This document shows positions 11,860-42,633 of a stretch of 64,000 bases of DNA, one piece after another (within the stretch, counting starts at the first letter, position 1; every line of letters starts with the position of its first letter). Under the pieces are notes generated by a model that was given only the letters and a program-made list of their open reading frames with translations, was not told where the DNA came from and did no database searches. A program made the position numbers and the translations under genes. This DNA is from Salisapilia sapeloensis CBS 127946 (lineage: Eukaryota > Protista > Oomycota): assembly GCA_023334545.1 (NCBI GenBank), contig JAADVB010000031.1, positions 44,529-108,528 of the forward strand. The letters run 5' to 3'.

Positions 11860-12360
11860 CCTTGATCTTTGTGAAATCAAGAGGAAAGGATCGTCGAGAA
11901 GACTTCCAGTCACGTCGGATGCTCGAAGTGTGCAAATTCGAGAAAGCGCGCGAAAGACTGAGCTCTTCGCTTTACTTGCGCTAGTTAGCTCTTCGCTATT
12001 ATTTCGGAACAGGCGTAGCACAGTGGTGGACGAAATAATTGGATGGCATTTGTGACTCGCACTGTAACCGTCCCAGTGAAATGACGAAGAGCTCAATGTT
12101 GCAAGTAAATCGAATGACACTTCAACCTGAAGGACTTCGATGATCAACCACGATGAGCTCGATACTAGCCTCACTAAAGCATGGCAGAGGAGCGGACGAT
12201 ACATGTGCATAGGCTTAGAAAGATAAATAGCAGCGTAAGAATAACGCGAAACGCCAAAGACTTAAGCATTGACTCTTACTATAGTTTGTACATCTTTGTT
12301 CACATGATGCCTAATATTACTAGCTTAACACTTGATTGTCTGCTTAACGAACACGGCCTA
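11860..12360 (+). repeat. Dispersed ~500-bp element, copy A (hairpin 11966-12114 plus small ORF 12181-12402)
   Basis: Colinear similarity to 38100-38596 and to the reverse complement of 42171-42633 (gaagacttc.agtcacg, gctcgaa.tgtgcaaatt, cgcgaaagact, gagctcttcgc, acttcaacctgaa, gcattga.tc, aacg.acacg.cct). Confidence 0.9.
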
Positions 12361-12895
12361 CGTGTCGGTTTAAACTGTCACCAACTTCTCCAATTCTATT
12401 AGTGAGGCTGCCAAGTCGACAAACGATGATGCATCGACTAGACTGGAAATCTACGCGAGTACAACTTCAAATGGCAAGATGACATCGTAGCGATAGCATT
12501 GCTCTGCACTGCAATTCATCTTGTGACCTCATGTAAATGTACACTGCCTCAAGTTCGATGCAGCATGATTGGTTCTGCACAGTAAACTATCATCCAATTT
12601 CTGCGATCAAGTTCATACATCACGTTATCCCCACCAAGTTTCATGAATTGCCATCGCTCGTTGTACTCGCACTAGTCAAGGTCTAAAAGTAAACCAGTAG
12701 ACCAGCATATCTTCCAATATTTCCTACACTATACACTAGAGGTCGATCGACCACCAACGGAAGCCCCCATCTCCGTTTCCATCCAGTCACGATCAACTCA
12801 GACGTAATCGACCATCACTCATCCCCACTCCCATACAAAGTCTAGTATACACGCTTCCGACTAGGTCTATCGGCCGCCACGAGCACCAAGTCTGA

Positions 12896-14025
12896 ATGGA
12901 GCAAGTGAATTCGAATGCACCAAAGAAACGAGTGCATACGCCGTTCGAATGGGCTCTAGGTATCTTCTACATCGTCTGCGTGGCACTCATCTGGACGTTC
13001 GCCAGCGTACTTGTGCAGTACATTTTCCAAGAGATGGAACTCGATGCGTACAACTCGTTTATTATTATGCCATGTCGAGGTAGTGACCGTATCTTTATGA
13101 TAGACCCTTCTTCCTCACGTATGTCTGTGCCTCGCTATTTGCCGTCAATCTACCGATATGGTGGATCGGGCGAGTAGTGTACCCTCGAGTAGCTCGCTAC
13201 TTGGGCTTAACTAGCCGCATGCTGTATGAACCGCTAGCCGAGCCAGCAGTCGATCGAAAGTATTATACGCGAGTCCTTCGGGTCAGTGCAATCGTCGCGC
13301 CGATCTGGTTCCTCGCGAGTTACGCGTACAATGAAAGTCTGAACGAAACGAGCATCACAAGCAGTACGCTCATCTCATCGACGTCGACGATTTTCACCTT
13401 TTTACTCAGTCTACTCGTACTCGGCGAGCGGTTCTTTATGGTGAAACTAGTTGGCGTACTACTCTGTGTCGCTGGGTGCATGACAACGATATTCAATGAA
13501 GACAAGAGCCACGGACCGGTGTTAAAAGACCATGTCGGAGGCGACGTGCTTGCTCTGCTATCCGCCGTCTTGTATGGTGTCTACACTGTGGTCATCCGGC
13601 GTTTGATTCCGGACGACGACAGCATCAGCGTCGCGCTTTTCTTTGGTTTCCTAGGAGCTCTCCACTTTATCTTCCTCCTACCGCTCGTCATCGCTAACCA
13701 CTACTCTGGCTTTGAACCGCTCGATCGGCTCACATGGCAACACATTGGCCTGATCTGCGTCAAAGGTCTGTTTGACAATGTCCTGTCTGACTACCTTTGG
13801 GCCAAGGCGATTTTGCTGACGTCGCCGACCGTGGCCACCGTCGGTCTCTCCTTGACCGTTCCGCTGGCTATCGTCGCCGACCTCATTTTCCGTCACGTCG
13901 GGCCGACGATCGTGACGTGGCTCGCCTCATTCCTCGTTGTCGCTGGCTTCTTACTCATCAACGTGAGCACGCGCCGACATGAGGCCGAGGACGCGGATCC
14001 GAGCAAGTCATTGGTCATTTCCTAG
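12896..14025 (+). CDS. DMT/EamA-superfamily transporter, SLC35F5/THI74-like; one intron ~13049-13102
   Basis: Spliced WTFASVLVQYIF...PFFLTY, PIWFLASYAYNESL...TSITSSTLISSTSTIFT, GDVLALLSAVLYGVYTVVIRR, DNVLSDYLWAKAILLTSPTVATVGLSLTVPLAIVAD. About 10 hydrophobic segments. Confidence 0.88.
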
Positions 14026-14143
14026 TTTTTTGGATTTGTCGTGGCTAGTTTGGGAAACCATGTTGAAGTGTCAGGTAGAACAAATAGGCGACAAGAAATT
14101 CCTGAAACGAACTTGATTATTCCTCGTGCTTGTCACACGATTC

Positions 14144-14150
14144 TCATTTC
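14144..14150 (+). promoter_or_regulatory. Possible oomycete Inr-like core promoter element (TCATTTC) upstream of the F-box gene
   Basis: Matches YCAYTYY about 25 bp before ATG 14175 and is followed by a T-rich tract. The motif is short, so it could be chance. Confidence 0.3.
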
Positions 14151-14174
14151 ATCTTTTTCTTCTATTCGTCTACG

Positions 14175-15376
14175 ATGACAGCAAAAATGTCGACCTCTAT
14201 GTTTTCACAAGACATGGACATTGCTCAGCAAGATGCATATGCTATGGCAACCGTCGCCATGGTTGCAGGCGCGATGCTCGCTTTTAAACGGACGTCGATG
14301 AATGTTCAAGCACCGGAAGTATCCCTTGTAGCATCTCGGTCCAAGATGACCATGTTGCCAACGGATATGTTACAGCACGTCCTGTCCTTCGTCGGACATT
14401 CTGATCTACACGCAGTGGAGCAAGTGTCCGTCGCGTCCTTCCGACTCGTAAATGAAAATCGTAAGCTGCTTTCTTGTAGACTCAATGTACCTATATGAAC
14501 CCTCAATTTCTTAGCTTTCGTATGGAGACAACATGCTCTCCGGTCTCTCGTCTCTTCCGCTTCTACTCGACATCTTATGTCATTCAAGCAGCAGGCATGT
14601 CTCGCCCATCGAAGGGAGCAAGACTCGGACCTCCTGACTTCCATACAAGGTAAACTCGTCCTGCATCTGATTCCTACGTTTCCTAGTCTTACAATCTATT
14701 TATAGGATTCTCGTCAGAAGATCGACCGACAGAGAGCGTCCATAACACATTACGCCAGTCGAAATGCTGGCGAGAGTTTCAGAATCTAGCGATTAGCACC
14801 CCATCGCGCAATCCACAGCAGTCGCTATGGAAACAAGTTACGTGCGAACGCATCCAGCGTGTCTGTGGCTGCATGCACGGTCGAGCTTGTTACTGGAGTA
14901 GCTCCCCTTCGTCTCTCCCGGATGCGTCGGATTACATCGACTATGGCTTCGACGCGACTTGTATCGTCAGTCGCGTTCAGCTATCGCCTTACCAAGTGTA
15001 CTGGCATCCGAATAACCCGACGTACGGCCCGCAGAGCATCTCGATCGAGTTCCGAACCAAAGACGGCAGTGTCTTGTACCACTCCCGTCGCTACAGCGTC
15101 GACAATCGGATGACTCTACAGGAGTTTGCGCTCGGATCTAAAGTTCTCGTGACGACCGACACTGTCATGCGGGTGAACCTCATCGGTCGACAGCAGGAGC
15201 AGACGTACCATAACGCTAGTCTCCAAGGCTATCCCTCGGCCGAGGCACCAGAGTACTATTGCTGCATCAGCTATGTGGGTGCTGTTGGTATCCGATGTGA
15301 TAACCAGAGCATGGAGAAACGTCGTGACCAGGTGCGAAAGACACTGCTGGACTGGTGGACGTCGCGGAACGTGTAA
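14175..15376 (+). CDS. F-box protein of the plant At4g00755-like type; two introns (~14462-14514, ~14651-14706)
   Basis: F-box-like MLPTDMLQHVLSFVGHSDLHAVEQVS. Spliced C-terminal domain SSEDRPTESVHNTL...YWSSSPS...QLSPYQVYWHPNNPTYGPQSISIEF...LIGRQQEQ...YYCCISYVGAVG, recalled as matching the family pattern. Confidence 0.72.
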
Positions 15377-15410
15377 AGAGTATCTTAACGATATAGATTT
15401 ATTCTGTCTT

Positions 15411-16037
15411 CTAGAGCTTTTCGATTTCCACACGTAATCCACAGACACATTTTTTATACCATTGTAACGTCTGAGGGTTTTGCTCTTCCTCGAATGTATG
15501 TTGATGGTCTGTAGTAGAGATCGGAGTGTAGTCTTTGTGTGCGTTCTGTTCGAGCTTGGGATCTAGTCGACGAACCTTTTTCTTCGGAGCAATGTCAGAA
15601 GCATGTCGGAGATAGCCTTTGGTTTTGATAGCTGCTTTCGAGTAAGATTCTTTCCGTCGACGACGTACCTCTGCTTCGAGACCATTTTTGTCTTTATATC
15701 GGCGATAGGCTTCTTCTAAAAGAGTCTTTTTCAAGTAGAGTTTGACTGGTGCAAAGCTTTCGTGACGAGGGTTTGGACGTGTAGCGTATGGTAGGGACCG
15801 AGACGGATCGAAGAAGCTTTCTGGAAGAGCAAACTCGATCTTGGCTCGGCCTTTGGCGACGAGCTCATAGCGTCCGTCAAGCATATTTAAGTCGTGTTTG
15901 CAATGAGAGCATACTTGGATGTGGAAAGTGTCTTGTAGAGTACGATCCAAGTATCTATCAGGAAGTTCACACTCGCTGCATTCGCCACGAGGTAGTTCAG
16001 CCTTTTGCATGCTCGTGTCGTCCGGATTGCTGGTCAT
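15411..16037 (-). CDS. XPA: XPA/Rad14 nucleotide-excision-repair protein
   Basis: C4 zinc finger CSEC...VCSHCK, central PYATRPNPRHESFAPVKLYLK, C-terminal HQHTF...KKCVCGLRVEIEKL. Start is taken at MTSNPDD. Confidence 0.9.
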   Translation of the reverse strand: MTSNPDDTSMQKAELPRGECSECELPDRYLDRTLQDTFHIQVCSHCKHDLNMLDGRYELVAKGRAKIEFALPESFFDPSRSLPYATRPNPRHESFAPVKLYLKKTLLEEAYRRYKDKNGLEAEVRRRRKESYSKAAIKTKGYLRHASDIAPKKKVRRLDPKLEQNAHKDYTPISTTDHQHTFEEEQNPQTLQWYKKCVCGLRVEIEKL

Positions 16038-16684
16038 GATGTACAGAATTTCTTTTCTTTGATGAGGTAGTGGGGCTTTATTGGTTGAAAAGATAGATAA
16101 TAGCGAATCAGTGGAGAGAGATTGGCGGGAAATGGAAGCAGCTCCTGGTACCACCAAGAGCTCTTTCTGCTTGAACTCTTCAAGCAGAGATTATAGGCCT
16201 GTAAAAGGGGGTTGGAATGGACATTGGTATTAGGATGATTCTTAATTGGTGGGGATGAACAGTGGTTGGTCGTATCGATCGCCATGATGTACTCGAAAGT
16301 ACATTCTTAGGTCAAGATGGTAGAAAACACTTTAAAGTTGATATAGGGTGCCGAAAAGAGTCCTTAGAGCTTTGATCTATTGCTAGTGTATTGGTGTCGA
16401 AGAATGACTTGACTCAGTTTCTTGAGGCAGTCCTTCGAAAGAATATTCCGAATGAAATACCTATCAATATAAAGTCACTTCTGTGTACACGGCTGAGTCA
16501 TCCAGCGAAGACAAGACACGTGGATATGTCGTGGAAGCCACCTTGTTTTCACAACTTGCCCAAGCTTCCTGTCCTCGTGTCGTTCGTGCAACCTCCACCG
16601 AGCCACATTTCTAACAGCCCAAAGCTAGATAACTGTGATATTTGTTGTTCGTAACACCACCATATTCAGCTCCTTTAACTCGCC

Positions 16685-17768
<1,084 letters not shown>

Positions 17769-18095
17769 CTGCGAAAACGAATACAAAGAGTGTTTTCTTT
17801 TCTTTGTTGGCAGTTTGGATAGTAGGTTGCACGAAGGTATGGATACAATCGCACTTGATTGAAATCGAGGAGCTACGGATGTGATTTGGGAACCGAGCGT
17901 CTTGGGCGAAGGCGGTGCATACTCTCCGTCGCGCTTCTCGTCCTTTACTAGTTTAGTCGTCCGCGTTACAGACGAAAAGGTTGAGGGGAGACTCGCGTTT
18001 TCTGATTGCAATTTGTGGCATTCATACTAGTGTCCAAGACATTTTTCATCGGCGAAAAGGGAGAGCAGCTCCCATCCTTATAAGTGTGGTAACTC

Positions 18096-21000
18096 ATGTC
18101 TTCTGAGCAAGACAAGACCGTATCTACTTTTCTACAAGACTTACGTACGTATATCTTCTTATTCCTCTTGTATGGTCAAATCTGACTTTGATATGTAGTT
18201 GGTGGAAAGGAGTATGTCGAGGCAGATGCGAGTAAGCTGCACATCTCCCACCCGTCGACTCTCCAGTCGCTCTTCACCTCTATCATCGGCGTACTGGATG
18301 AAGCTCACCAGGTATACTCGTCTCTATATCGTCCTGTCAATCAAAAATTAATCGCATACGTTTGTATTAAAGATCTCGACACTCGAGGCGTTAATCAGTC
18401 TCGTTCGGAGTAATTGTACCAACGTCGAGGCCTGTGCAAGCGTCGGTCTGCCACAAGACGTGTTATCTTTTCTAAGTGAGCGAGGGCTCTTTGTCGATCC
18501 GTCCTTCACCATTCGTGTGCTCAAGAAAATCTATCGTTTGTTCCTTTACTTGTCCAGCTACTCGGTCACGAGTCAGGACATCCAGTCGATGCTATCTGTC
18601 TTCCAAAGCTCTCGTATGCAGAAAGAAGCACCAGACGATGCAGCCGTCAGCTACTTTCTAGCGACCATGGAGATGATCGCTCGTGACTCGTTCGGCCCGC
18701 CGTCCTACTTTGACTTGAGTGGCGAGTACTCTGGTTTGAACATGGAGGCATTAGATGCCTTCCCGACAAATGGATACACGTTCTGTGCCTGGATCAAGTT
18801 CGAATGTCTTCCGGACGTCCCGGCGCCGCTTTACACTTTCTGTGGCAAGTCAGACGTCGGTGTCTCTTGCTCCTTCACTCGTTCCTCTTTGCTCCTCTCA
18901 ACGTTCGATAAGAAAAAGAACGACGGACATGTCGAAGTTCCAGACTTGTTGACACCTGGGAGGTGGCACTTTGTCTGCATCGCACATACGCACCGGCAGT
19001 TCCGTGGCTCCAAGGTCGACGTCTTTTTGAACGGAGAGCTGCGACATAGTAGTAAGCTCGTGTACCCGAACGCAGCGCTCATGTCTCCCGTGGAAAAGTC
19101 GTTAATCGGGATGCGAGACAGCAAGGGCAGTAACTCGTTACGCGTCCTCCTCGGTCCCACAGCGCTCTTCGGCCAAGCACTGTCAGCGACAACCATCTCT
19201 GGCATCCGCAGTGCTGAAGAGTACGACGCGCTTGTCTTCCAATTCAATTCGTACATTTCATCCTCTTCGACGTCCGGCGGTACGACATCCACCGCTGCTT
19301 CGAACACTGCGGCAAGTTCTCCGAACGCAAATGACGGGCTGCTCTTTGCCTTTGACGCCCGCAACTGCGACAAGTCGAAGGGCGTCTGCTACGATTCGAG
19401 CGGGAACGACCATCACGCATCGGCTATCAGCGCTGGCGTGCGACTGCGTCACGCAGGTACGTTCAAGCAGGCTGTGGCAGAGCTAGGCGGTCCCTTAGTC
19501 TGTCTCCCGTTGCTTGTGAGCGTGACGCAGCCCAAGGGACACACGGAGACTGTGGAGGATGCTCGTCGGTCTCTCGTGGAGGCTCCATCTGTAGATAAAG
19601 TGTCGACACAGTTCGATGAGGACGCTGCGTTCCTCGTGCAGATGGGCGACTTGCTATCGAGTCCACTAGGTCCTCGAACGATCCCGAAGGTCGTGCTCTT
19701 GATCGCTGAGATCATGCGCCATTCGCTCGTGAATAAATTCATCTTCCGTCGCAACGGAGGTGTGCGTCTCATGGCGCTCTTAATCCGATCTTTACCAGCA
19801 GCGTACTTGACGCATGACCTCTTAACATCCGTCGAACGTCTTCGTAGCGCAGTCTCCTCCGATCGTATCCTTACGGATGAAGTGTACAAGTTCCTCTTGT
19901 TCAACTTTCGCATCTGGGTGAATGCTCCACTAGACGTCCAAGACCTCGTGTTCGACAAGTTCGAGATCTCGAAACGTGAAGGTGCGACTACGACATCAAC
20001 AGCATCTACTCGCCACTTTCTCCGTTGTCTCTCATGGATCTACTGGAAAGATAGCGATGATATGTCGCTCCGTCGGTCGCGAGACTTTAGCCTAGACGAG
20101 ATCAATCACTTGCGTACGAGAGTGTTGAATATCCTCGAGATCGTCTTGTGTGAAGCGCCGTCCGTGAAACCTGTGGCTGGTCGCGGAGGTAAGCTCCGGG
20201 AGCCTAAGAAGCAGCTTTCCTACGACAACATCCGTACACTCATCTTTAGTATGATCGGGAAACCGACGAACGTGAATGCCTTTGCGTCGCAACAGGAAGG
20301 AGATGGCGGACAAGAGGAAGGAGAGCTCAAGATTGCTGGAGGGTACACTTCGTCTCCGCCGAAGATCACGAATCCGGATGATGATAGCGAAGCGAGTTTG
20401 ATCGTCGAAAACGTCCCGGAGCATGACCTCCCGGATCTACTGCAGCTCCTGATCGAACTGTCCGTCCAGCCGACTGCTCCGTCAGGTCTACTGTCGCTGT
20501 TCACGCGTCTTGGCGGTCTGCGCATCTGGCTACCGCTTCTGGACTTTGCGAGTGACGCCACGAGAGTCATGGCACTCCGTCTTCTACGCACATACCTCTA
20601 TTTCAAATGCTCTTGTTCTCGTGATAAGGATAAAGCCACGAGTACGGACAAGGTGCACTTGTCTCGCATCGATGCTCGGCTTATTATGCACGCTTTAAAC
20701 TTTGAATATCATCCGTTAACGATGGGTGTGTATGGTGAACTACTACTCATCCTCCTTGGTGTGCAGGTGACGCCGGATGACATGAAGGTTCTAAGTGGTA
20801 AGACGCAAGCGCATGACTTTTTAATCGACGACGAACTCCTTTCGAACGCCATGATATGGCATAGTAACCTCGTCTACCCGCTCTTGGAGATTCTACGTGC
20901 GTGTCCGACTGCCATTCGGATGCTCGCCGTTCGACACATGAAGATCCTCTTTGGATCCACGACGGCCGCGAGTGCTGTCAATCGACACATGCTCATCTTT

Positions 21001-24000
21001 AATGGCCACTACGTCCACGGCGGTCCCGCAGCGACGGCTATCGTGCCGCCTATCGACATGGTTCCTGTCGTCGAAGCGGTCATGAGCGTCAGTCGAGGAG
21101 AGACAGATCGTGCGGAGATGCAGGCGCAGTCACCTCCGTCTGTTCTCTTCGGCATTAAGCTTGAGACAATGGAAGCGGTGGGGGTGAATGAGCTACGACA
21201 AAAGGTGCTGGATGCTTCGGAGAGTGAAGACGACCGCGTGAACGCCGTGTATACTTTGCTGCAGCGAGAGGACGTAGCGTTCGTGAAGCAGTTGCTGCTA
21301 GTGCCGAGTGCAGAGGAGAAGCTGTCGAACGGATTGGCGTATGGCGACATGTCGAATCGTGTCAAGCTCGCGATCGTCGAGTTGCTCGCTCACATGGCAC
21401 CCAAGGAGGCGAGTGATAGTATCGCGGACGGTGCATGCGACGTTTTGTCTTCTGTCGTTTGTCTTGAAGCGAAAACGAATGACCTTGCGTGGTCGTTGCT
21501 CCAGGACGTCTTCCCGAACATGTCACGATGCTGCTCTTCGCAGGAAGAAGCAGAGCGTGCTGCGATTGGACTGTTACGTATGACACTTGATAAGCTGAGT
21601 GCCGTCCTCGCGACGGAGATGAATGGCGAGATTGGAGAAGAGACGCCTACGCGAGACTCGACGTTATGGCGGAATGCAGAGAGCGTTGCGACCTTGGCGT
21701 CTGCTGTCGTGCTCCACTACGATCCGGATGCGCTAGGTCAAGTAGATCCGAACGCGACGGCCAAGATGCCAGAGGAAGAAGCTGCCACCGCAGACGTCTT
21801 CTGGCGCTGCGAGCGTGTAATGCCACAGGAAGCAGACCTGGTAAACTCGATCCTATCGATCTGGCAGCACTTTGCGCCGCTCTTCCATGCAGATAACGAC
21901 GCCAGCTTTGCTCGTCGAACGAGTACAGCGGCGAAGAGTGCAGAGGAGACTGCTAGAGCTTCGAGTGGACGCAAGACGTTTGGTATTGGTATGCTCACAG
22001 GTACGTCCATCCCTGGCGGCGTGTACGGCACACCTGTATCATCTCGACCACATCCTGGTGGTGCCATGCGACAAGTGCTGCAGCTCTTGCTCCGTCACTT
22101 TTACCTTGCGCTCTTTGAAGACGTGGATCATAGCGCTGATGCGGACTTTAAAGCGTCTGAGACGACGCCTGATGCAGTCTTCTTCGCGCGTATCGAAAAG
22201 CTCGAGCACTTTATCGACGCCATGAGCCTCGGTCGTGAGCTGGCCAAGTTCGAGTCCTCCTTCACACCGCAGCGTCGGCGCAGTCTGTCGCAACCAGGCA
22301 CAGGCGGTCTCGTCACGACGTGCGACAGCATCCGCGCTGCTCCCGGAGACGAGACGTCGCTCTTATTATGGTTTATCCCGGAGCTAGCGCACTTGATCCA
22401 CCAAGTGCGCCGTCGGTCGTGGTCGGATGCCGCCGTGAAGCTCGCGAGTCTCCTCGCATCCTTCGTGACCGTCCCGCTACGATCATCCGGCGCACTGGCG
22501 TCGCTACTAGACAAGTCCGAGTTCAAGTCGAATAACGAAGACGTGCGACGTCGAGACTTGTTCTATCATGAGCAAGTAGCACACGCTAAAGACGGACGTC
22601 TCAAGAGTCGCGACGGACAGCTCCAAGAAGAGAAAGATGCCAAGGATCTCGCTCGCAACGAGATGGAACGTATACGTCGATCTGTTCGCCCGAATACTGT
22701 TCGCGTGCGTACGAATAAGAGTGGTGAGCCGCTGGAACAAGTGTGGTTGCAGCGAGTGAAAGCGAAAGACATTGATGACTGGACCAAGCTTCGAGTGTTG
22801 CTCAAGTGGAATATTCGACATGTCTGGGGATCCTCGAGTCCATTGCCGAGCGATAGTGCGCTGATCGAATTGTCTGGAGAGAATGAGTTCTGGCGTGTCG
22901 ATCCGTATACTTCGAGTAACTACGTCCGCTGTCGATTGCTCCCGGATACGAATGACGCTGTTGCAGAGTATGCCAAGTACGACGCGGCGTCAGATATGAA
23001 CCTCCCGTCGGGAGAAGATATTGTCGGTGCGTTGGCGACACCTGAGACGCAGGAGTCAAGTACTGAGACGCTTAAAGAGGACTCTGGTGACTCTTCAAAT
23101 GAGGAGACGGAGGAGAAGGAAGAGGAGGATCGACCTTCGCTACTAAACATGACGCAGGATCTACGTGGTAGTCAGTTGCAGACGCAGACTAGTAGTGGGG
23201 AGTTGATGGAAGGCACGAACCAAGAGTACGCTTCCATCTCTCTTCATGACGTTGGAGCACCAGTGGAGGAGGTCGAGACAGTAGAAAAGTCTGGTGTGTC
23301 GGAAGAAGCTTTGGAAGTGAAGACGACGGAGGCGGTCGCGGCGGAGAATGAAAACAAGTCGAGAGGTTCGATCACACGTATCGGCAGTCGTTTCTCGACT
23401 GGTCTCCAGCGTCTCGCGAGTGGATTGAGTCTCAAGTCTGGTGACGAAAGCGTTGCGGAGGTTACGGAAAGGATTCGATCAAATAGTCAGTCTGTTCCTG
23501 CCAGTCGCGACAGAGTGGAGAGTGAGGAAAATGCGGTTGAAAGCAGCTCACCCAAGAAGTTGAGTCGAGAGGATAGTGTGGAGGATGCGGTGGCACCCAA
23601 GAGGACGAGGTCTCTTACGGCCGACGCGAGTAAGAATGAGCAGTGGAAGAACCTCGGTGCGGCGTACAGGACCAAGACGTACCTAGTGCTACCGTCCGGT
23701 GTGATCGTATACGGCAGCCTCCGCATCGGATCCACCACGATCATTTTTGAAGGCGAACAGCTAAGTACGCTCAAGGACATCTCGGCGCGTAAGTCGGCAA
23801 GTGACTCGGCAGATATCGATCAAGCGTATGTGTCAGAGCTTCGACGTCGTATCTGGGGCGTTCGAGTCATTCGAGTCATGCAACGCCGTCGGTTCCTCTT
23901 GAACGTCCGCAACGGCATTGAGATCTACTTTGTCGATGGCAGTTCGTGCTTTTGGGGACTCGAGAGCGAAGGAGAGGCGGATCTAGTGTACGCCGTGTTG

Positions 24001-29621: not shown

Positions 29622-29677
29622 AAAGATGCGGATATAGACGAGGTGTGTCCAAGGGAATATAAACCTAGAGCTATATT

Positions 29678-30945: not shown

Positions 30946-31292
30946 CCTGCTACTGCGCACGCCAGAGCGCCTTTGTACTTAAAATAGCCTCATTTCCGTA
31001 TATTGAAGTTATGGTCCGTATGTCGCTCGTCCTGGACTACTTGGTGCGTGTCTGGCTCGTTTGCCCCAATTTTTACTATGAAAAAGTCCATGTCTGCACG
31101 TGTCTACGTCGATCTATTTTCCATACGAATGGTCCTGTCGGTATCTGATTTATCAGGTCTTTGCCTTGAACGAACCATCCTCGCGTACGTCCAAAGCTAG
31201 TTGAAAGATCCAGTTGCACTGGATTTCTGACTATACAAAGACCAAGTGGAATTGATGACGGCTGGTGCCTGGCGATTTGCGTTGCTTACTAC

Positions 31293-32282: not shown

Positions 32283-32350
32283 GCAGTACAAGTCGAAAGA
32301 AATAACTTATGAAGCAATCTAGCATCTTGTCCATTACATTCCCTGTTATC

Positions 32351-34290
32351 TTATGTCACTTTCATCTTCCAGATCTTGAGTTTAAACCCAAAGATTTCAG
32401 ATGCAGCGGAGGAGAAAGCAGAGAGGACGACGACCCTCGTGAGATTATACAGGAGCGGATTCATGGTGAGGCCAGAGACCTTGTTGGGCGAATTGAGCTC
32501 CTTGAGGAGCTTACTCGCAAGTTTCAAGACGTTGTTCGAGATCAAGAGCTTCTCTTTCTTCTGAGGCTTGACGAGTAGACGCAAGTAGACGTTCATCTGC
32601 TCCGTTAGGAGGAGAGACGTGTTCTGGTACTTGCGATTGATGTGGCTGCCGAGCATGATGAAGCGCAGCATGAAGATGCTCGCAATGAGCGACCAGATCG
32701 TCACTTCGGCGTGGATCAAGTTGTTCTGGAGCGGACCAGTGGACTCGGAAACGAGTTGGAGACCCATGACAGCGAGGAGGACGAGGTTGATGACGAAAGA
32801 CGTCGAGACGATCTCGTCGGCTGCGCGCTGCTTGCCCTGGCGCTTCAGCCACGTCCGACCGCCACGCAGAGCGATCCACGCCTTGATGTTCACGACATTT
32901 TTCAATCGAAAGTGCGGCAGGTTGTTCTGACGCGAGCGACGAGAAGACGTGAGTGCAGTGAAGCACTTGGCGTAGAGGAACCGACGGTGGTACGTTGCCT
33001 CGGCGTCTGCGAGAGCAGAGAAGATGGTGGACGCCATAAAGTAGGTCGTGAGCATGCAGGAGAAGGCGATGAAAGCAGATGACAAGGGGAGTGTCTCGAG
33101 GTCTAGGTCCCATGGGTTCAACTGCTGATACCTGTCCGATAGGAGAGACATGGAGTCGAGCATGTCTTGCTCCTGGAACGACCTTAGGCAGTCCGTCTTG
33201 ACGCACGAGACGTACATCCGGACGAGGAGCGGTACTGTGGCGAGGATGATGGACGATAGGAAGCCAATGTTACGGTAGATAGCTCTCGGCTGGGTCATGC
33301 GGACCTTGGCGAGGATCGTGTTGCGTAGCTCCGTCACGGTCATCTCTTGCTTGACGGGCAGACCGTCCTCCCACATGCACACTTTAACGTGACGTCGCGA
33401 GAGCGAGTCTGACTTGTCTTCTCCTGCTCGAGCAGAGTACGCGGATCGAAGTCGAGACTGGTTTGGCGTGCGAGGATATCGTCTCGGACTCGCAGGTTCT
33501 GAGACCGTGTGGTAGTACGGATCTTTCTTATCCTCGCGCTCTTCTTCGCTCGAAGTAGACACGTTGTCGCTTTCTTCACCGCTGTCGGTGCTATTGTCCG
33601 AGTTATCCGACTCGCCTAGACTGGACGAGAGACCTGTGAGCATCGCTGCTGTCGTCAATGGGTTCTGCGTCGGCTGGTACTTAGAGTCGGACGATCCGTT
33701 CTGGTTCTTCGGCGAGAAGATATGAAGGGATGGGTCGCCGTCCGTGGCTTGGAGTGCACTGGAGACACGTCCGTACTCGACAGCGATGAGCAGGAGGAGG
33801 CAGACGGGGAAAATGACTTCGAATGTACTGACGATGGAGGTTTCTGTCTGCTGGAGGAAGATGCAGATCGCTGTCATGTGTAGTAGGAATAACGCAGTCG
33901 CGATTTCGTAGAAATGGGGCTATGCACATGCGTCTTAGACTTGGATGGTCATGAGAAAGGAATGAGAACTTACTTTTTGTCGCCAAAAGCTGGCGTAGAA
34001 TGGGAGGAAGAGGACACGGTAGATGCCTTCTTTAATGAGCTTTCGATCATGATTCGAAGGTTTCGTGTGGAACAAGGCAGAGCTAGTGCATGATAAGTCG
34101 ATTGCATAGTCATTTAAATGGAATCGACGTACCCTTTGATCACATCAAAGTCGATAAACTCTCTCGTCATGTTCAGGTCATTCTTGGGATTCCGCGGGTC
34201 TTTGTGGCTGCGTGCACGTGGGGACGTGCTTCGCGTCGTCCCACGCTTTCCTTCTTTCCTCGGTCGAGAGCTATCAAATTCGTCTTCCAT
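32351..34290 (-). CDS. PHTF: PHTF-family (putative homeodomain transcription factor-like) membrane protein; two 5' introns, start uncertain
   Basis: AEATYHRRFLYAKCFTALTSSRRSRQNNLPHFRLKNVVNIKAWIAL...KRQGKQRAADEIVS, recalled as matching the PHTF C-terminus. Upstream exons give FIDFDVIKG-SALFHTKP...EGIYRVLFLPFY. Confidence 0.82.
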
Positions 34291-34582
34291 ATCTATCTAT
34301 CGTCACTGGTCTTTCGCATGCGTCGAGACAAGAGGGAAGGAGTGCCAGTCGATTAAATACAAGGAGGGAATTCAGCTCGTGCCAGATGGGACGTAGGTAT
34401 AAATGGTTGCAATGCCTTCGTCGACAGAAACGAGGGACACGAGTTGATGGCTTGTGATCGATGCGTCCGATCCGATTGTGCTACGAATTCAGCTTAAATA
34501 TTTCTCCGTGAAACTTCCATCAAGCGACGTACAGACGATGGCGATCACCAAGAGATAGAGACACACATTGTATTCGATCTAA

Positions 34583-35588
34583 TTATAACATCCGCTGCTT
34601 TGTCTTTCGTTCACGCCACTTGCGCCATGCGACGATACTGATGCATGTGCCCAGAAGCACGAGCACGAGGTGAGTCGCGAACAAGAGCGGACTTATCCAA
34701 AAGCCGCACGCGACGCCCTTCCAGCCCTATAGAATCGATTAGCGCTATGAAACCCAAAATCCGTGTCGAGGACAACTGTACCTTGATCTCGCGTGTCATG
34801 AGGCTAGCAGAACCATATTGCGTGGTCAAGTACTGCGCCACGTCGTTTGGTAATGGCTGCAACTGCGTGGGTGAGATGCCGTCGCTGACACCGACGGGCG
34901 CAGTACGCAATGGGAACACAGAATTCTTGGCGACGCATCCGCCGCAGCACATGTGGTCTGTATACTCGCGCAAGCCTTCCGAGCAGCATACGAGACTCGA
35001 GTTATAGTCATAATGATCTGGTATTAACACGTTCTCCGGGTTCGTACGGACTTGCAAAGCATTCTTTTCAATGTACCAATAGATGTCAACCCAAATGGAC
35101 AGATCTTTTCGATCGTAGACACGGATGCACGGGTCATGCAGTCTCGGGTCTGACCAGTAGAAATAGTGGTTCTCCGTATCGTATGTGATCTTGGACTTGT
35201 GAGGAATATCGTCCTGACGGTCATACGCGATGAGTCCTTGCGCCGTAAACTCGTGCTTGAGCTGGGAAATGGCGTCGCACGTCGTATTCATGACGCCCAG
35301 ATCGATGTCGTACTCCCATGGAATCAAACCTTCTTCGCGATAGATACCTAGTAAAGTACCTTTGTCGAGCCAATATTTGATCTCGTGGGCTTGTAGTACG
35401 CGTGATGTCCTCGTGAGCATATCTGCCATCGGTGCACGTGTATCACACTTGCTGTAGACGAAAAAAGTGCCCCATAGCACGACGACGAGAAGTACTAGCA
35501 ACAAGAGGAGACGCTTGATGAGCGCAGGCGTACTCGTCGACCGACTTCCGTGAGACGGACGTGATGTGGATCCCTTCGTAGGTAGCAT
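34583..35588 (-). CDS. LicD/fukutin-family nucleotidyl-phosphotransferase; intron 34727-34781
   Basis: YWLDKGTLLGIYREEGLIPWEYDIDLG (DxD motif), an N-terminal TM, and a spliced last exon GWKGVACGFWISPLLFATHLVLVLLGTCISIVAWRKWRERK...ML*. Confidence 0.88.
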
Positions 35589-35828
35589 TGCTCGATGCTA
35601 GTAGATAAGAGAGCCCCAGACGTTCGCTGCGCACTTATCGCGGGATGCCAGATGCTTTGGGCTGACTGGACCAGTGGATACGCAATCAAGATCGTAGCAA
35701 TCTCATGTCTCGATAGAAATGTATATCGGTAGGTAGCGTGGTGTGATGAAAGGATAAATATAGCGTAGGAAGATGTTGAAACTGCTTTTACACTTTCGAC
35801 GAAGTACGCGTTGTGCTTTTTAATCAAT

Positions 35829-37597
35829 ATGCTGCGAAAGTTGTTTTACTGCTCGAGCGCTGGGAACAATGAATATGCGCTAACTGAAGACTCGTCTGGG
35901 TTTCCAGAGCTCACTGCACAGCTCGATTTGGTCGAAAGTATGCCTTTTGTATACATATACTCTGGCGGGATATTGAGATGGAATGGCTTGGTAGGTCGAT
36001 TAATGGAGGTAGTAACTGAAGTCAGACGACACATCCACGCAGCGAATGGTAGTCTGCAACTCGCGATTCAACGCACTAGACTTAATTTTGTCTAACCGGA
36101 AAGATGTAGATCTGGTATTGTCCGGACGAGCACTTCGTACGCTATCGTTAAGTGAAGGCAGCTCTCCCGAGACCGAGGAAGATGAGTTTGTCCGTCAATT
36201 AGAAGGATTTGAAGACTCGACGACATCCCCCTTGCTGAAACTGCTGGACAGCATTCCTCACCTTCGCGTAAGGATGATCTTCATGAATATTTATCCATGC
36301 TACTGAGACTAAATTATATACTTGTGCTTATAGGTTCGTAGTGATCATCGAAATTGTGCCATGTCCCTAACGCACCAATATCAACGCAAGATGGATCACT
36401 TACAAGCCGAGAAGGCAGTCAAAACCAGTCGCTTTCGAAGAGTAACTTGTCGATTATCTTCCTGTACGGCTTTGATCAACTCCCTCATCTCGTTTTCTTT
36501 TAGAATTGTGCCAAGCTCAATGCTGCATCTACACGTTTCAAGGACCTTGATCTGAAAGTTCGAGCAGACATGCAAAAGCTATTTGAAGAAGAAAAAAAGC
36601 TGACAAGAGATGCACTATCGGTCAAGGTACTTGTCTATCCACTACTTTGTTTATCGTCTTATCCTCATAGGATTTCTAGGTTTTATACTTGCAAAAGCTA
36701 GTACGAATGCAGCTTGATACGGAAGCATCTTTAATAAAGAAACAGGTTGCAGACCAAACAAAAGATGACGGCAGAGAACCATGCCGTTCTCCAAAGTGTG
36801 ACAAGTACCTGAATGACCGTGCGATATCTGAGGAGACCGTTGACCTAGAGGTTGGTGTATGCCCTTCACCATCCATCGACGATGCAGGGTCACCTAAAGG
36901 AGGTGCGCTGCGATCTCCAAAAGAACCTAGCCCAAAGTCCCGTGTTATGCCGCAGCATGTACTCGATGAAGACCGCAGTGTCTGTCCTCGACGCAAGCAT
37001 GTATATGGTACGAGTACTTGGAAGTTACACCAGCATATCAAGATGACCATGGCGGATGGATTTGATCTATCCGAATGCATCCAGTTACCGGACGGCACCC
37101 CGATCGAAGAATGGATTGCAGTGCATGTAATAGATTTCTTCAATGAGATCAGTCTCCTGTATGGAACTATCAGTGAGCTTTGCACACCAACGACATGTCC
37201 GGAGATGACTGCTGGACCACGGTACACTTATCTGTGGGCTGACGGTGTCGACCAAATCATCCCAGTCTCCATCCCGGCTCCGGAATACGTCGCGAAACTC
37301 TTGGAATGGATCGATCTGCAAGTGAATAACCCTGAACTATTTCCAGTGGATGGAGAGCATCATGAAGTCCGAGGCTTCATGTCTATCGCAAAGACCATTC
37401 TAAAGCGTTTATTCCGTGTCTATGCGCACATCTACCACAGCCATCTTCAGAACTATGCCATGTTGGAAGCAGAAACCCATCTTAACTTTTGCTTTAAACG
37501 ATTTGTTCTATTCGTACGCGAATACCGACTGATCGATCCGAAGGAACTAAATGCGCTTCGTGTACTCATCCATCGCATCGTCGGGCAACCACATTGA
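35829..37597 (+). CDS. MOB1-family kinase activator with long N-terminal helical/coiled-coil extension; five introns
   Basis: Exons splice in frame from MLRKLFYC... through DALSVK-VLYLQKLVRMQLD to the MOB domain EWIAVHVIDFFNEISLLYGTISELCTPTTCPEM...AHIYHSH...HLNFCFKRF. Zn ligands C,C,H,H are retained. Confidence 0.82.
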
Positions 37598-38099
37598 CAA
37601 CATTTATAATCAAATACACTGCATGATATCATTTGGTGTAGTAACTTTGTTTGATATGGGATTAAGACGCACTCATGATCTGAGTTTGTAGCCACGATCC
37701 AGCAATGAAAGCTCATCTGGCCCTTTGATTTACATCTACAGTGACATGCGTATTAAACTATATCCTGCTGACCTTCTCATGCCTAAAATTCACACTGCCT
37801 CCTTGCATCTTTATTTCATTGCTCAGTTCCCAGAAGGTCTTAAAGTGTTTAGATATGCACATAATAGAGAGCTAGCAGCGATCGAGTAGGTTGCCAGATA
37901 GTGAGGCCATGGTCGCGCTGAATCAGTGTTCAAAGAACTTGCGGATTCGCATGTTGTCATTCCACTCATGACAATTGAATAGGCAAACTCTGCGTTTGCT
38001 GAGAATAGCCAATTTTGTTTTGCCATTTACCATTGGAAACCCAACGAAGCACTTCAATGTAACTTTTTCACCATAGTAGGAGTACAAAAGCAAGTAATC

Positions 38100-38596
38100 G
38101 TTCGTCTTGGATGCAATCAGGAGAAAACCATCTTCGCGAAGACTTCAAGTCACGCCTATTGCTCGAAATGTGCAAATTTGAAAAAGTGCGCGAAAGACTC
38201 GGTGAGCTCTTCGCTTTAGTTGCGGTATTGAGCTCTTCGCTATTATTTCAGAACAGGCGTAGTACAGTGTCAAACGCAATAATTTAGTGATATATGTGAC
38301 TCGCACCGTACTTTGTCCCACTAAAATGGCGAAGAGCTAACTAGCGCAAGTAAAGCGAAAGCAACTTCAACCTGAAGGGTTCTGAGGACACGCTCGACAC
38401 TATGCCCCGCCAAAGCTTGGCTGAGAACCGGACTGTATACGTGGAAAGAGAAGGAAATGTGGACAATCATGGTAAAGTAGGACGAATCGCCAAAGATGTA
38501 GGCATTGATTCCAATTATAATTCATCTATGTTTCTTTTCATAATACCAGTTATTCCTTGCATAATACCCGGTTACCCGCTGAACGAACACGACCTC
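38100..38596 (+). repeat. Dispersed ~500-bp element, copy B (hairpin 38210-38359 plus small ORF 38402-38605)
   Basis: Colinear with copies A and C. 38329-38359 is the exact reverse complement of 11966-11996. Confidence 0.9.
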
Positions 38597-38769
38597 ATAC
38601 AGTAGTACAAACCAAAAAGCATTGGGACCAAGTAGACGTTAACTTGGCGAAACTGGAATTAACGCGGTCCCCGTAAAGTATCTTTGCTGCATACGTAATC
38701 AAGCTCAAGTTCAAGGTGAAGCTCTGCTCTCACAAATCCTTTAAGCGCATCGAGCTCGAAGAAAGAATC

Positions 38770-39512
38770 ATGAGCACGAAAACTGTCCTTATTACCGGAG
38801 CCTCTCGGAGCATCGGGCTAGAGCTGGCGAAAGAGTACAAGGGGCTCGGCTGGAATGTCATCGGCGCCGTCCGTAGCCCGGACTCAGCTACTCAGGTACA
38901 TTATTGTTAGGCATACTAGAAATGCACATCCTCATGCCAGTGTGATAGCTCAAGGAGCTGAGCCCGTACAAGGTTGTTCGGATGGATATGAAGGACGAGT
39001 CTTCCATCCTGGATGCTGCCAAGAGCGTCGAGTCCGAGCCCATCGACCTGCTCATTAACAACGCTGGTATCTTGTATCGTCGCGGCTTCCAAGACACGAC
39101 GAAAGAAGACATGATGGAACAGTTCGAAGTGAACGTTACAGGTCCCTTCTTGACGACGCGTGCCTTCTTACCGAACTTGAAAGAGGCCGTCAAGCAGCGT
39201 GGAGAAGCCAAAGTCGTGCAAATCTCGTCCTACCTCGGCAGTATCGAATTAGCTCCGCCAAGCACATACGGCTACAACACTTCCAAGGCAGGTGTCAATA
39301 TGGTTCAAAAGTGCATTTCGCAAGACTTCAAGGACGAAAAGATCACTACTGTCAGCCTGCACCCTGGCTACGTCGCTACGGATATGAACGACTACAAGGG
39401 CGTCGTCAAGGTGACTGACAGTGCAAAAGGTCTCGTAAGTGTCATCCAAGGTCTTACGCATGACAATACCGGCAAGTTCTTTGACTACACCGGAGCTCCA
39501 CTACCGTGGTAG
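38770..39512 (+). CDS. Short-chain dehydrogenase/reductase, C-factor (CsgA)-like; intron 38896-38948
   Basis: TVLITGASRSIGLELAK, LLINNAGI, catalytic YNTSKAG, SLHPGYVATDM. Confidence 0.93.
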
Positions 39513-39612
39513 GCTTGGCGCTACTAGCTGAGAGCATCTGCCTGAAAAAATAATTTTCAATTTCTTTTCTTTTCTTTGTTTGAGCACAATAAATCTCCAC
39601 CATCAAGTCGGA

Positions 39613-40653
39613 ATGGCTACGAGGTCGCTCCGTACGCTCGTATCGGCGGCAGGACAAGCTGTCCGTCGCAACAATGTTGCTGCACGTGTAGCTAGCTTCC
39701 ATCCACTCGTGAATACGCCTATGAATGCTAGTGTCCACTTCCCGTCTTCTGTAGCATCCAATGGCAGTGTGCGCTTCATGGCGAGTGACCGAGCTGAACG
39801 TCGTAAGAAGCTTCGTAAGCAGAAGAAGAAAGGTGGTAAGCAAGCACCGCTCTTGAAAGACACACTCCGAAAGCTTTATTTGCGTACACACCCGGATCTG
39901 TTTGCTCAATACCCAGAGCAGCAGCAGCAGAATGAGGAATCGTACAAGGAATTGATGGGCATCTTGGATTCGATTGAAAAGAATAACGAGTACCCGCCTG
40001 CGAAGACGCAGATCCTACCTTTCTACTTGAAAACACCTCAGGAAGGGGAGTTCCGAGAAGTGTCGCTACACCTCCGTACCACTGGCGGTGCTTGCAATAC
40101 GTTAGTGGAGGAAGCTCTCGGGCAGTTTTTCAGCGACTGTGGTCTCCCACCGTCGTTCCAGTGGGGAGAAGGTAGCTGGGGAAGAGCAGTCGGTAAGGAA
40201 GAAGTGAAGAACTCGAACATGGATTTCCATGAAGAGGAGAGTCGACCTGTGCAGCCAGAACCGGAGCCAGAGTACACTCCGAGTCCGCCGTCTTCGAATG
40301 AAAAGTCGATTGAGACGATTCTGGATGAACTAAATGATGTCTTTGAGATCATTGCAGCTGTGCCTGTGATGGATGAAGAAGAGTTTGGTGAGCTGAGGGG
40401 GTACTACGTCGATGGTGAAGGACTGGATGAGATCGAGTCGAGAGGCTTTATGATCAAAGAGCCGACGCATAGGATTTGGGAAGGCGAGCGTGACTTGAGT
40501 GTGCTCACCAAGGGACTTGACAGCGATAGTGCGTTGATTGTGCAGCGAATTTTACTCCACACGCAGGTTATTGAACAGAAGATTCAGGAGATCTTGGAGA
40601 ATGGAGGTGTAGACCCGGATGACGACTCGAACGATACTTCCAAGTCGACGTAG
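39613..40653 (+). CDS. Probable mitochondrial DUF4460/TCAIM-like protein
   Basis: Arg/Ser/Ala-rich presequence-like N-terminus, then LRKLYLRTHPDLFAQYPEQQQQNEESYKEL (J-like HPD motif of DUF4460). Confidence 0.7.
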   Translation: MATRSLRTLVSAAGQAVRRNNVAARVASFHPLVNTPMNASVHFPSSVASNGSVRFMASDRAERRKKLRKQKKKGGKQAPLLKDTLRKLYLRTHPDLFAQYPEQQQQNEESYKELMGILDSIEKNNEYPPAKTQILPFYLKTPQEGEFREVSLHLRTTGGACNTLVEEALGQFFSDCGLPPSFQWGEGSWGRAVGKEEVKNSNMDFHEEESRPVQPEPEPEYTPSPPSSNEKSIETILDELNDVFEIIAAVPVMDEEEFGELRGYYVDGEGLDEIESRGFMIKEPTHRIWEGERDLSVLTKGLDSDSALIVQRILLHTQVIEQKIQEILENGGVDPDDDSNDTSKST

Positions 40654-40870
40654 ATTGCTTGCACTGCATTAGACTAGACATGCCGCATCAATGTTCATCC
40701 TTTTGCATTCACTTTTGGTTGATGAAGGCTAGAGTTCGATTGGTATATGACCGCTTTCGTACAGGACATAGCTATAGCAGAGGTAGCATTTACGAAGAAT
40801 AGCTAAAAGGATCGGTTCACAGGCCTGTGTATGTTGTCAATGTTTCCTGGTGTATAAAATATAAAAAGTG

Positions 40871-40942
40871 GGGCCTTGCCGGAGATCGAATCCGGGACCT
40901 CACGCACCCTAAGCGTGAATCATACCACTAGACCACAAGGCC
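40871..40942 (-). tRNA. tRNA-Pro(AGG): tRNA-Pro (anticodon AGG)
   Basis: The reverse complement folds as a cloverleaf: GGCCTTG/CAAGGCC acceptor, CACGC-TTAGGGT-GCGTG anticodon arm, CCGGA-TTCGATC-TCCGG T arm. It is followed by CACTTTTT (Pol III terminator). Confidence 0.97.
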
Positions 40943-42170
40943 AGCTGTCCGTTTCATTAAATGCTATATATAAAAAATAATGATATATTTGTTGTAGTAA
41001 CCTGGTACGAATTGCGAGTCTATAAGCTGGAAACTAATGAGTGATACTTTCGTTCTTGTGAGGCGTAGACGCTATGGTGTTGTAAAACCAGACTCTAAAG
41101 CTTTTGCATTTGGTGAGGATATCACTAGAAAGTTGTATGGAGGGTAAGCATGAGATCCAAAGCTGTGATACATCGTTGAATAAATATGCACGCTATCATG
41201 GACCCTGCATCATTTTATCTGCCCTTACGCATGCGTATCCAAAAGTTGTTTGCTTCTTTATAAACACAGCTATCATCGGGCGCGTATCGATGTCAACATG
41301 TTACCATTTTCATGCTCGATTTATCTTCTAAGAGAGGCAATGCACTCTGTTCTGGCAGAAATGAAGCTTGTCACAAAATCTAGACCCGAGTTTAGACCGT
41401 GGAAATGGCTTATCTGTCGGTCCCTTTATCAGTACAAAATCAATACTTGACTCGGTAGGGACTGTGCTTGCATTGCATACTGAATACAAGCTAGAGATAA
41501 GCTTAGGCATTTCACAGTATCTAGAAATAGCTGGAGGCAAAGTTTGTGAACAAAAGCCGCCTTTCAAACCGATTAGTACCATCAGAACTGGTCCTCTCAC
41601 ACAGACATTTTTGCTACACTAAGCTTTCGCTTCTTGATCAAAAATTTTACTAAGTGTATTCCTTTTTAAATGTATGTAAGGGGAGGTCAAGTGTTTTTTC
41701 ATTGTATCCGAGCTAAATATTGTTTTTATTTGTAGCTGCACGGCTGAGTTTTCAAGGTTGTAAATGCAAACCATGATGATCAAAGCACTACGCGAACTAC
41801 TTTGTTGGTCACAAATGCTTTGTATGGATGAACATTGCACCTTTCGGCACTGTCGCCCATGAAGCGAGACTTCGTTTAAAATATTTCTCGACTCACTACT
41901 ATAATCTTCACTGAAGCCTTCCAGTATAGATTTTGGTATCTGCAATGAAGGAAGACGAGTTCTAGGTATTATTTGCGTAATAGGCATGGTCTATTTCATA
42001 TCATCATTACCTAGATCTAATCATCTATATATAAATGAACAAGTGCTCAAGTGTCCACCATGAGACATACGTTCAGAAGCGCTACCCAGCCCAGTAACCT
42101 TCACATCCATCTCATCGGTCATTTGACCGTGTCTTGACGATCACATTCCAGCGGATGCATCGTAAATAAT

Positions 42171-42633
42171 CAGGCCGTGTACGTTCAGCGGATTATCGGG
42201 CATTTTGAAAAGAAACACGGATGAATTGTAATAGGAATCAATGCCCAAGTCTCTGGCTGTTGATCCTACTCCTAGATTTCTATCCGCGTGTAATGTCTGT
42301 TCCTCTGGCGTGTCTTGGCGGGAATAGTGTCGAGAGTATAGTGATAGATCGTCGGAAGTCATTCAGGTTGAAGTTGCATTCGATTTACTTGCAACATTGA
42401 GCTTTTCGCCATTTCAGTGGGACGGGTACAGTGTGAGTCGCAAATGCCGCCCAATTAGTTCACCCACCACTGTACTATGCCTGTTTCGAAATAATAGCGA
42501 AGGGCTCACTAGCGCAAGCGAAGAGCTCACCGAGTCTTTCGCGCGGTTTTACAAATTTGCACATTTCGAGCAATAGGCGTGACTTGAAGTCTTCTCCAAG
42601 ATCATTTCCTCCTGATTACATCGAAGACCAAGG
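42171..42633 (-). repeat. Dispersed ~500-bp element, copy C (hairpin 42379-42522 plus small ORF 42141-42362)
   Basis: The reverse complement is colinear with copies A and B, with two short deletions in the ORF part. Confidence 0.9.

Follow-up and report, generated by a model that had tools for sequence, protein, structure and literature searches.

Hairpin-bearing repeats of Salisapilia sapeloensis are remnants of an old, non-coding transposon family, probably of the Tourist-like type

What are the three diverged repeats of about 500 bp, each a long hairpin followed by an open reading frame, that lie within a 64,000-nucleotide stretch of contig JAADVB010000031.1 of Salisapilia sapeloensis CBS 127946 (hereafter, the window)? 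The initial annotation proposed two answers: an undescribed non-autonomous mobile element or a structured-RNA-plus-micropeptide family. All three copies were found where they had been reported, colinear and 72-74% identical pairwise, and their intergenic placement was upheld, with copy B ending 177 bp short of an expressed, spliced SDR-like gene. The proposed extent was not upheld, since the start had been set too far in. Homology continues about 240-280 bp further upstream in copies A and B and about 530 bp in copy C (Table 1). The 500-bp repeats are the best-preserved portion of what is left of an old cut-and-paste transposon that does not code for protein, and the 500-bp module consists of internal filler and the 3' end of one subfamily.

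Table 1. Positions of the three element copies and their parts in the window
Feature	Position	Strand	Description
Copy A, full element	11621-12358	+	V1 form, 738 bp; decayed 5' TIR GGCTGCGATTGCAC, 5' part, ~500-bp module, 3' end ...AACGAACACGGCC; flanks TAT / TAC
Copy A, hairpin core	11966-12114	+	Internal inverted repeat
Copy B, full element	37905-38594	+	V1 form, 690 bp; 5' TIR GGCCATGGTCGCGC, 3' end ...GAACGAACACGACC; flanks TGA / TCA
Copy B, 58-62-codon frame (MQSGxN.LREDFK...)	38111-38284	+	Overlaps 5' arm; judged non-coding
Copy B, hairpin core	38210-38359	+	-68.7 kcal/mol
Copy C, full element	about 42173-43165	-	V2 form, ~990 bp; 5' TIR decayed, start placed by alignment to the 5' part
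Copy C, hairpin core	42379-42522	-	
Copy C, extra segment	42655-42916	-	Confined to V2 and S forms; terminates in a second copy of the 3' terminus
Copy C, second 3' terminus	42657-42670		caacgaatacaacc, then TTG

The element ends were located with an alignment of 32 copies and their flanks. Homology begins directly after TTA with GGCCGTGTTCGCG and stops at CAACGAACACGGCC directly before TTA, and in about 20 loci the flanking sequence was unique past both ends. Terminal inverted repeats (TIRs) lie at these limits, namely GGCCGTGTTCG and, at the opposite end, CGAACACGGCC. The earlier statement that there are no TIRs was, therefore, overturned by the TIRs and a 3-bp duplication at the true ends. 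A search of the genome for TTAGGCCGTGTTCG with a TTA flank and at most one mismatch gave 45 matches, compared to 2 in the control. On average, the 3-nt flanks of 26 copies agreed at 1.69 of 3 positions, compared to 0.69 in an offset control, and the left flank was TTA in 12 of them. Because the copies are old, a perfect 3-bp duplication is seen in just 5 of the 26. Perfect flank pairs were seen at L008, L023, L015, L011, L024, C578, and C589; complete end pairs include C578 (TTA/TTA) and C589 (TAA/TAA), and the flanks of L006 read TAA/TAA once its 3' end is shifted by one base. No empty sites or insertion polymorphism were seen and, thus, the mobility of the family is deduced from its structure.

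A 3-bp TTA/TAA or TNA duplication is a hallmark of PIF/Harbinger and Tourist elements (PMC2836001, PMC12477816). TIRs and TTA/TAA duplications at the true ends would make the family a PIF/Harbinger-type MITE and not an unrecognised kind of element. The earlier proposal was, therefore, borne out as to a mobile, non-autonomous element and had to be given up as to an undescribed kind. Judged from its sequence features, the family very likely consists of old DNA transposons that are neither coding nor autonomous and that arose as MITE-like deletion derivatives, most probably within PIF/Harbinger ("Tourist-like"). Like Tourist-like MITEs such as mPing, which is mobilised by Ping/Pong, the elements are non-coding and have a high copy number, carry short TIRs starting with GGCC next to a 3-bp TTA/TAA (TNA) duplication, insert near genes, and form subfamilies with common ends and different interiors (PMC2836001, PMC12477816). 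They also count as short, but their size range of 460-1000 bp reaches the upper limit for such elements and is larger than most, and lengths of 690-1000 bp, at or beyond the usual MITE size, count against the MITE reading. Two other differences are that the ends are more decayed than the internal 250-bp hairpin core and that an autonomous partner with matching ends was not found among the loci examined here.

Such a partner would be expected to encode a Myb-like ORF1 besides the DDE_Tnp_4 transposase (PF13359). The search for one, which had been suggested as a check, was centred on this transposase, for which the genome has 19 matches, 17 of them above the curated cut-off. No element termini were found at 10 of these loci (1.5-kb flanks), 6 of which were extended to about 5 kb on each side, and no element sequence of any kind was found at the loci examined in this fragmented assembly (22.4 Mb, 1365 contigs). 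Scans for inverted repeats and for pairs of the terminal-repeat pattern returned short elements only. As these searches turned up no autonomous counterpart, the superfamily is assigned from the pattern of repeats and duplications. In the mechanism that we propose, the transposase of a different element would recognise the TIRs, excise the copy, and insert it at TTA/TAA, thereby duplicating 3 bp. The long hairpin would be an internal inverted repeat passed down from the founder copy.

The expectation of a high copy number was confirmed. A 27-mer of the core occurred 149 times in the genome with up to three mismatches, compared to 0 in the control, giving at least 149 hairpin-bearing copies. The S, V1, and V2 forms have their termini in common; V2, the form of copy C, has a duplicated 3' end, and one related form is without the hairpin module. 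The trees of core and tail were star-like and unresolved, with long, short, V1, and V2 labels intermixed. The spread of per-copy divergence from the consensus was no greater than the binomial expectation, which suggests a single old burst, after which all copies, which look to be about the same age, became heavily decayed. Since the copies are similar in age and this decayed, the family is probably immobile now. The main use of the result is in annotation, as one family (S, V1, V2, and hAT-nested) explains well over 100 intergenic hairpins in the genome. Many contigs of the assembly are broken by it.

In the nested form, a composite with 29 or more copies, the element sits inside a hAT-like element. 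Short CAGGG-type ends and 8-bp target duplications are hallmarks of hAT elements. The composite resembles non-autonomous hAT-type elements in both, with CAGGGTTTGGAA and TTCCAAACCCTG as its ends, and the comparison applies to this long form only. It differs from them in that the Tourist-like element occupies the same internal site in every copy of the shell (29 of 29). Flanks compared automatically matched at 1, 3, 5, 6, 1, 6, 7, 7, 6, and 4 of 8 positions against a control mean of 2.7, and those of L042 rose from 1 to 8 of 8 (ATCCATAG/ATCCATAG) when the left end was read one base further in. The hAT dimerisation domain had a single weak match in the assembly. One copy may have inserted into the hAT-like element, with the resulting composite then multiplying via its own ends. 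Both V1 and V2 interiors are present within the same hAT-like context, so exchange between copies or repeated deletion is needed.

The family would be an ordinary MITE family were it not for its uneven decay, which is the point of wider interest. Pairwise identity is 0.80-0.90 in the hairpin core and 0.62-0.72 in the TIRs, the 5' part, and the tail, which means that the ends of the element have decayed about twice as fast as its internal hairpin. The hairpin half had been described as better conserved than the half with the reading frame, and this agrees with our values (0.80-0.90 vs 0.62-0.75 for the 3' half). The contrast is also seen in copies found by the 5' part alone (81-85% for the core vs 70-75%). 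The flanking duplications, which fall within the 0.62-0.72 range as well, have decayed about like the tail and unlike the core, and the arms of the hairpin are more conserved than its loop. TIRs that are less conserved than an internal core are the opposite of what selection for mobility would leave and are not predicted by plain neutral decay. A palindrome that outlasts the ends of its element offers a clean case for weighing palindrome-driven conversion against host exaptation in oomycete repeats. Singleton counts, tried as a way to separate change before and after insertion, were rejected as invalid because most independent hits coincide among 39 copies at about 20% divergence.

Our best guess is that the palindrome sets off ectopic gene conversion and that this accounts for the slow decay of the core. 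Breaks at the palindrome would be repaired from other copies, keeping the centre in concert while the ends drift. We hold this explanation tentatively, as a possibility on the unlikely side. Identity on the 3' side falls smoothly away from the hairpin (0.86, 0.79, 0.75, 0.71, 0.67, and 0.62 at the end), and the V1 and V2 interiors within one hAT-like context are consistent with exchange. Within the composite, the 5' part and tail of the element are more diverse (identity of 0.68-0.70) than the composite's own arms (0.76-0.79). Some pairs of copies also had longer identical runs than column permutations in a GENECONV-like test, but the rate differs along the sequence, which confounds this signal. 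The trees show no clear mosaics, and a loop less conserved than the arms is not what conversion centred on a palindrome predicts. Alternatively, the GAGCTCTTCGC motif, which is repeated three times, may have a secondary function at the level of sequence.

The hairpin itself is as it had been described. The GACTTCAAGTC block, the outer stem AGCTCTTCG/CGAAGAGCT, the inner stem ACAGTG/CACTGT, and ACTTCAACCTGAA were all confirmed, and folding is far beyond chance. The fold of copy B has a z of -4.9 and a nearly equal counterpart on the opposite strand; copy L018 has a perfect stem of 26 bp and folds at -86.5 kcal/mol (z -9.9). None of 43 cores examined had an inverted loop. RNAalifold gave a consensus of only -1.96 kcal/mol in which the hairpin was not recovered and, thus, covariation was measured with a single-copy fold mapped onto the alignment. 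The fraction of hairpin cells that were paired (86.2%) was about the same as in shuffles (86.3%), and double changes were found in 14 pairs where 10.7 were expected. Rfam returned nothing at the gathering score for the window and nothing at E <=1 for three loci. RNA contig depth was 0-16 over the copies, compared to 460-970 for the neighbouring gene, and the hairpins of B and C had no coverage in these contigs, a type of data in which small RNAs are invisible. The hairpin is not an RNA gene. The idea of a structured-RNA-plus-micropeptide family is not supported, as covariation, Rfam and Pfam matches, a coding signature, and protein relatives were all absent and RNA coverage was almost nil.

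Another explanation for the slow decay is that the core is a functional, exapted unit borne by the transposon and held intact through selection at many loci, either as a source of hairpin RNA or siRNA or as a protein-binding palindrome built on the three GAGCTCTTCGC motifs. We consider both variants improbable. Foldback or MITE-derived hairpin loci yield small RNAs in plants, and the family resembles such microRNA and hairpin-siRNA genes in having a transposon-borne long inverted repeat that can fold from either strand (PMC9641971). It differs from them in that its hairpin is internal rather than built from the terminal repeats, is without covariation, and shows no sign of transcription or processing in the RNA contigs. 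Exaptation would account for the identity contrast, including that in copies retrieved through the 5' part, for flanking duplications as decayed as the tail, and for the lower conservation of the loop relative to the arms. Neighbouring genes also tend to have their 5' ends directed toward the element (14 of 23 on the downstream side, 14 of 20 on the upstream side), but the copies themselves have no clear orientation bias relative to genes in this small sample. Compensatory change was at the chance level and, therefore, nothing indicates selection on pairing. No relatives outside the S. sapeloensis genome, against which constraint could be measured, were found in metagenome scans (0 matches for the core 27-mer and for a degenerate 25-mer). 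It is similarly doubtful that a core of about 250 bp was seeded next to promoters by the transposon and then shielded from neutral decay at about 150 dispersed loci. If true, the module that spread across a compact oomycete genome would either serve as a source of hairpin siRNA or offer a palindromic platform for binding.

A family of micropeptide or small-protein genes after or overlapping the hairpin is hardly credible. Some open frame is present in the 3' half of each copy in the window, 67 codons long in B and 73 in C, but these frames vary in position, frame, and strand, so the small ORF of the initial annotation changes between copies and is not conserved. About one copy in three keeps the 62-codon frame across the 5' arm open; in most, stops or frameshifts interrupt this frame, and it has no third-position excess (diversity of 0.208/0.145/0.167 by codon position). 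There was no Pfam match, and a profile search found 0 matches in 1.84 billion proteins. With neither a conserved frame with third-position excess nor homologues, the reading frames are chance frames.

There is scarcely any probability that the repeat is instead part of a different kind of transposon, be it a solo LTR, SINE, Helitron end, or IS200/605-like hairpin element. In favour of this, the 500-bp module starts with TG, the loop string TAGTACAGTGG resembles a polymerase-III A box, and HUH elements use hairpins. Set against it are true ends made of inverted repeats and a 3-bp duplication rather than TG...CA with duplications of 4-6 bp, the lack of a poly(A) or tRNA-like head, and a hairpin that lies some 350 bp in from both ends and is not subterminal. 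A decayed LTR, the outcome named in advance as refuting a new element, was not found either. ARAGORN detected two tRNA-Pro genes in the window and nothing else. One tRNA-Pro gene lies 38 bp from the end of copy C, and an 87-nt inverted repeat around this copy, considered as a pair of transposon ends, was rejected because it is formed by the two tRNA-Pro genes.

Three colinear repeats, copies A, B and C, were confirmed at the places given in the initial annotation (Table), and every motif listed there was found in the copies. Copies C and A were 74% and 72% identical to copy B, respectively. The long hairpin was borne out by fold energies beyond chance. The folding energy of copy B was -68.7 kcal/mol (z -4.9) and that of its complement -63.5 (z -4.5), while L018, a better preserved genome copy, folded at -86.5 (z -9.9) with a perfect stem of 26 bp. 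The window is eukaryotic and densely packed with genes, whose introns are short and of the GT..AG type. Copy C is enclosed between two tRNA-Pro(AGG) genes in opposite orientation, 2.3 kb apart (40870-40942, minus; 43204-43276, plus), which are 98% identical over 87 nt, short flanks included; an apparent inverted repeat around copy C was this gene pair itself. Elsewhere in the window, a 33-nt (11-codon) unit in eight diverged copies (53687-54189) sits within a minus-strand reading frame of 2076 codons (52645-58875), and a 680-codon frame (50420-52462, minus) resembles glycoside hydrolase family 5 with a GH5 C-terminal domain, with a very high Atlas feature score.

Full elements in the window and mean pairwise identity by region among 12 composite copies
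Feature	Window position	Strand	Mean pairwise identity	Basis
Copy A, full element	11621-12358			alignment of family ends
Copy B, full element	37905-38594			alignment of family ends
Copy C, full element	about 42173-43165	minus		start from alignment to the 5' part
5' hairpin arm			0.89	12 composite copies
3' hairpin arm			0.84	12 composite copies
Shell arms			0.76-0.79	12 composite copies
5' part and tail			0.68-0.70	12 composite copies

The ends were mapped by aligning 32 copies, each with 300-bp flanks. The annotated start had been set too far in, as homology reached about 240-280 bp farther upstream (about 530 bp in copy C). Homology began with GGCCGTGTTCGCG, preceded by TTA, and ended with CAACGAACACGGCC, followed by TTA. 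No terminal inverted repeats (TIRs) had been seen in the initial annotation, but TIRs of at least 11 bp lie at these limits, with weaker similarity out to about 25 bp, and the flanks outside them were unique in about 20 loci. With up to one mismatch, TTAGGCCGTGTTCG had 45 genome matches compared to 2 for the control. Among these matches are complete end pairs, such as C578:52882-53641 (flanks TTA/TTA) and C589:11932-12394 (flanks TAA/TAA). For 26 copies the ends could be placed with confidence; their 3-nt flanks agreed at 1.69 of 3 positions versus 0.69 in an offset control, and 12 of the 26 had TTA as the left flank.

Short terminal repeats with a 3-bp TTA/TAA (TNA) duplication define PIF/Harbinger elements and Tourist-like MITEs (PMC2836001, PMC12477816). 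The repeat is most probably a species-level addition to a familiar class of element: a new family of Tourist-like MITEs, some of whose copies are nested in a hAT-like shell. The TIRs and 3-bp duplication support the earlier reading of a non-autonomous mobile element. An autonomous version with the same ends was not found. The genome contains 19 DDE_Tnp_4 matches, some uninterrupted; MITE termini and any other element sequence were absent from the ten loci examined, six of them with flanks extended to about 5 kb per side. The superfamily assignment is therefore based on the terminal-repeat and duplication pattern. At L057:1454-1535 (contig G000:C581), an element of about 80 bp, flanked by TAC on one side and TTA on the other, has the same type of ends (GACTGTGTTCGCGCAG, CTGCGCGAACACAC) and probably arose from this MITE family by extreme deletion. 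An intact-looking DDE_Tnp_4 gene lies about 5 kb away.

A search of the window's own assembly (22.4 Mb, 1365 contigs) with copy B gave 192 candidates. The 40 that were scored were all full-length and 74-81% identical, and many of them lay at the ends of contigs. The expected high copy number held: with up to 3 mismatches allowed, the most conserved core 27-mer occurred 149 times and a reversed control 0 times. At L074 (G000:C447) and L075 (G000:C1322), an insertion of about 150 bp within the hairpin loop splits the core.

The family occurs in several forms. Form S (460-640 bp) consists of the 5' TIR, the 5' part, a segment of about 300 bp and the 3' TIR, without the originally annotated module. 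In form V1 (copies A and B) the 5' part is joined to the module, and in form V2 (copy C) form S is followed by the module, so the 3' terminal 60 bp or so is present twice. A long composite, in at least 29 copies, carries a V1 or V2 element at one fixed site within a shell with arms of about 275 and 160 bp; the insert was present in 29 of 29 shell copies found. The shell ends, CAGGGTTTGGAA and TTCCAAACCCTG, with 8-bp duplications, are a hAT-like signature. One duplication is ATCCATAG/ATCCATAG once the left end is moved inward by one base relative to the automatic call, and further flank pairs agreed at 7/8, 7/8 and 6/8 positions compared to a control mean of 2.7. The assembly held a single weak match to the hAT dimerisation domain. 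Five loci (L008, L027, L030, L055 and L056) retain about 110 bp more of the shell, located 3' of the inner element and before the right arm; in other composite copies this piece is gone, precisely to the junction.

Two further readings, a structured RNA and a micropeptide, found no support. When the hairpin structure was mapped onto 38 aligned copies, 86.2% of cells paired versus 86.3% with shuffled partners, and double changes occurred at 14 pairs, barely higher than the 10.7 expected by chance. Since both values are near the shuffled or chance level, the pairing is explained by an inherited inverted repeat whose sequence is conserved, and not by selection on structure. An Rfam search gave no match. 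Three runs of the same organism were taken as RNA because the 53-nt GT..AG intron (38894-38946) of an SDR-like gene (38771-40898, plus), immediately 3' of copy B, was spliced out. In these runs, the contigs of this gene begin at about 38755-38778 with a depth of 460-970. Copy B was essentially without contig coverage, and coverage of copy C was confined to its 5' half (42490-43088; depth 6-16), in data uninformative on small RNAs. The 3'-half frames vary in position, frame and strand from copy to copy. A 62-codon frame (MQSGGN.LREDFK...) recurs over the 5' arm and is interrupted by stops or frameshifts in most copies, with no third-position excess (diversity by codon position 0.208/0.145/0.167). 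The frames had no Pfam match, and a profile from ten intact 62-codon versions found no relative among 1.84 billion proteins.

Per copy, the core diverged from the consensus by 10.9% (sd 2.1) and the tail by 19.3% (sd 3.1). The copies fit a single old burst, after which each decayed independently, since their spread was not above binomial, core and tail values were uncorrelated and the trees were star-like. Mean pairwise identity was highest in the hairpin core (0.80-0.90) and lower in the tail (0.62-0.75), the 5' part (0.59-0.71) and the 3' terminal repeat (about 0.62). Copies found solely via the 5' part showed the same pattern (core 81-85%, all other regions 70-75%), so the uneven conservation is not a search artefact. 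Three rate classes were seen among the 12 composite copies, with bootstrap intervals that did not overlap (Table). The 3-bp duplications consist of host DNA and had decayed as much as or more than the tail. Because core identity exceeds that of the tail, the 5' part and these duplications, the core has changed since insertion at about half the rate of sequence that appears neutral. The element's own ends are unprotected, which argues against selection for mobility. Two possible explanations of the slow decay were considered: gene conversion between copies, initiated at the palindrome, and a sequence-level function of the hairpin arms. The arms carry GAGCTCTTCGC three times.
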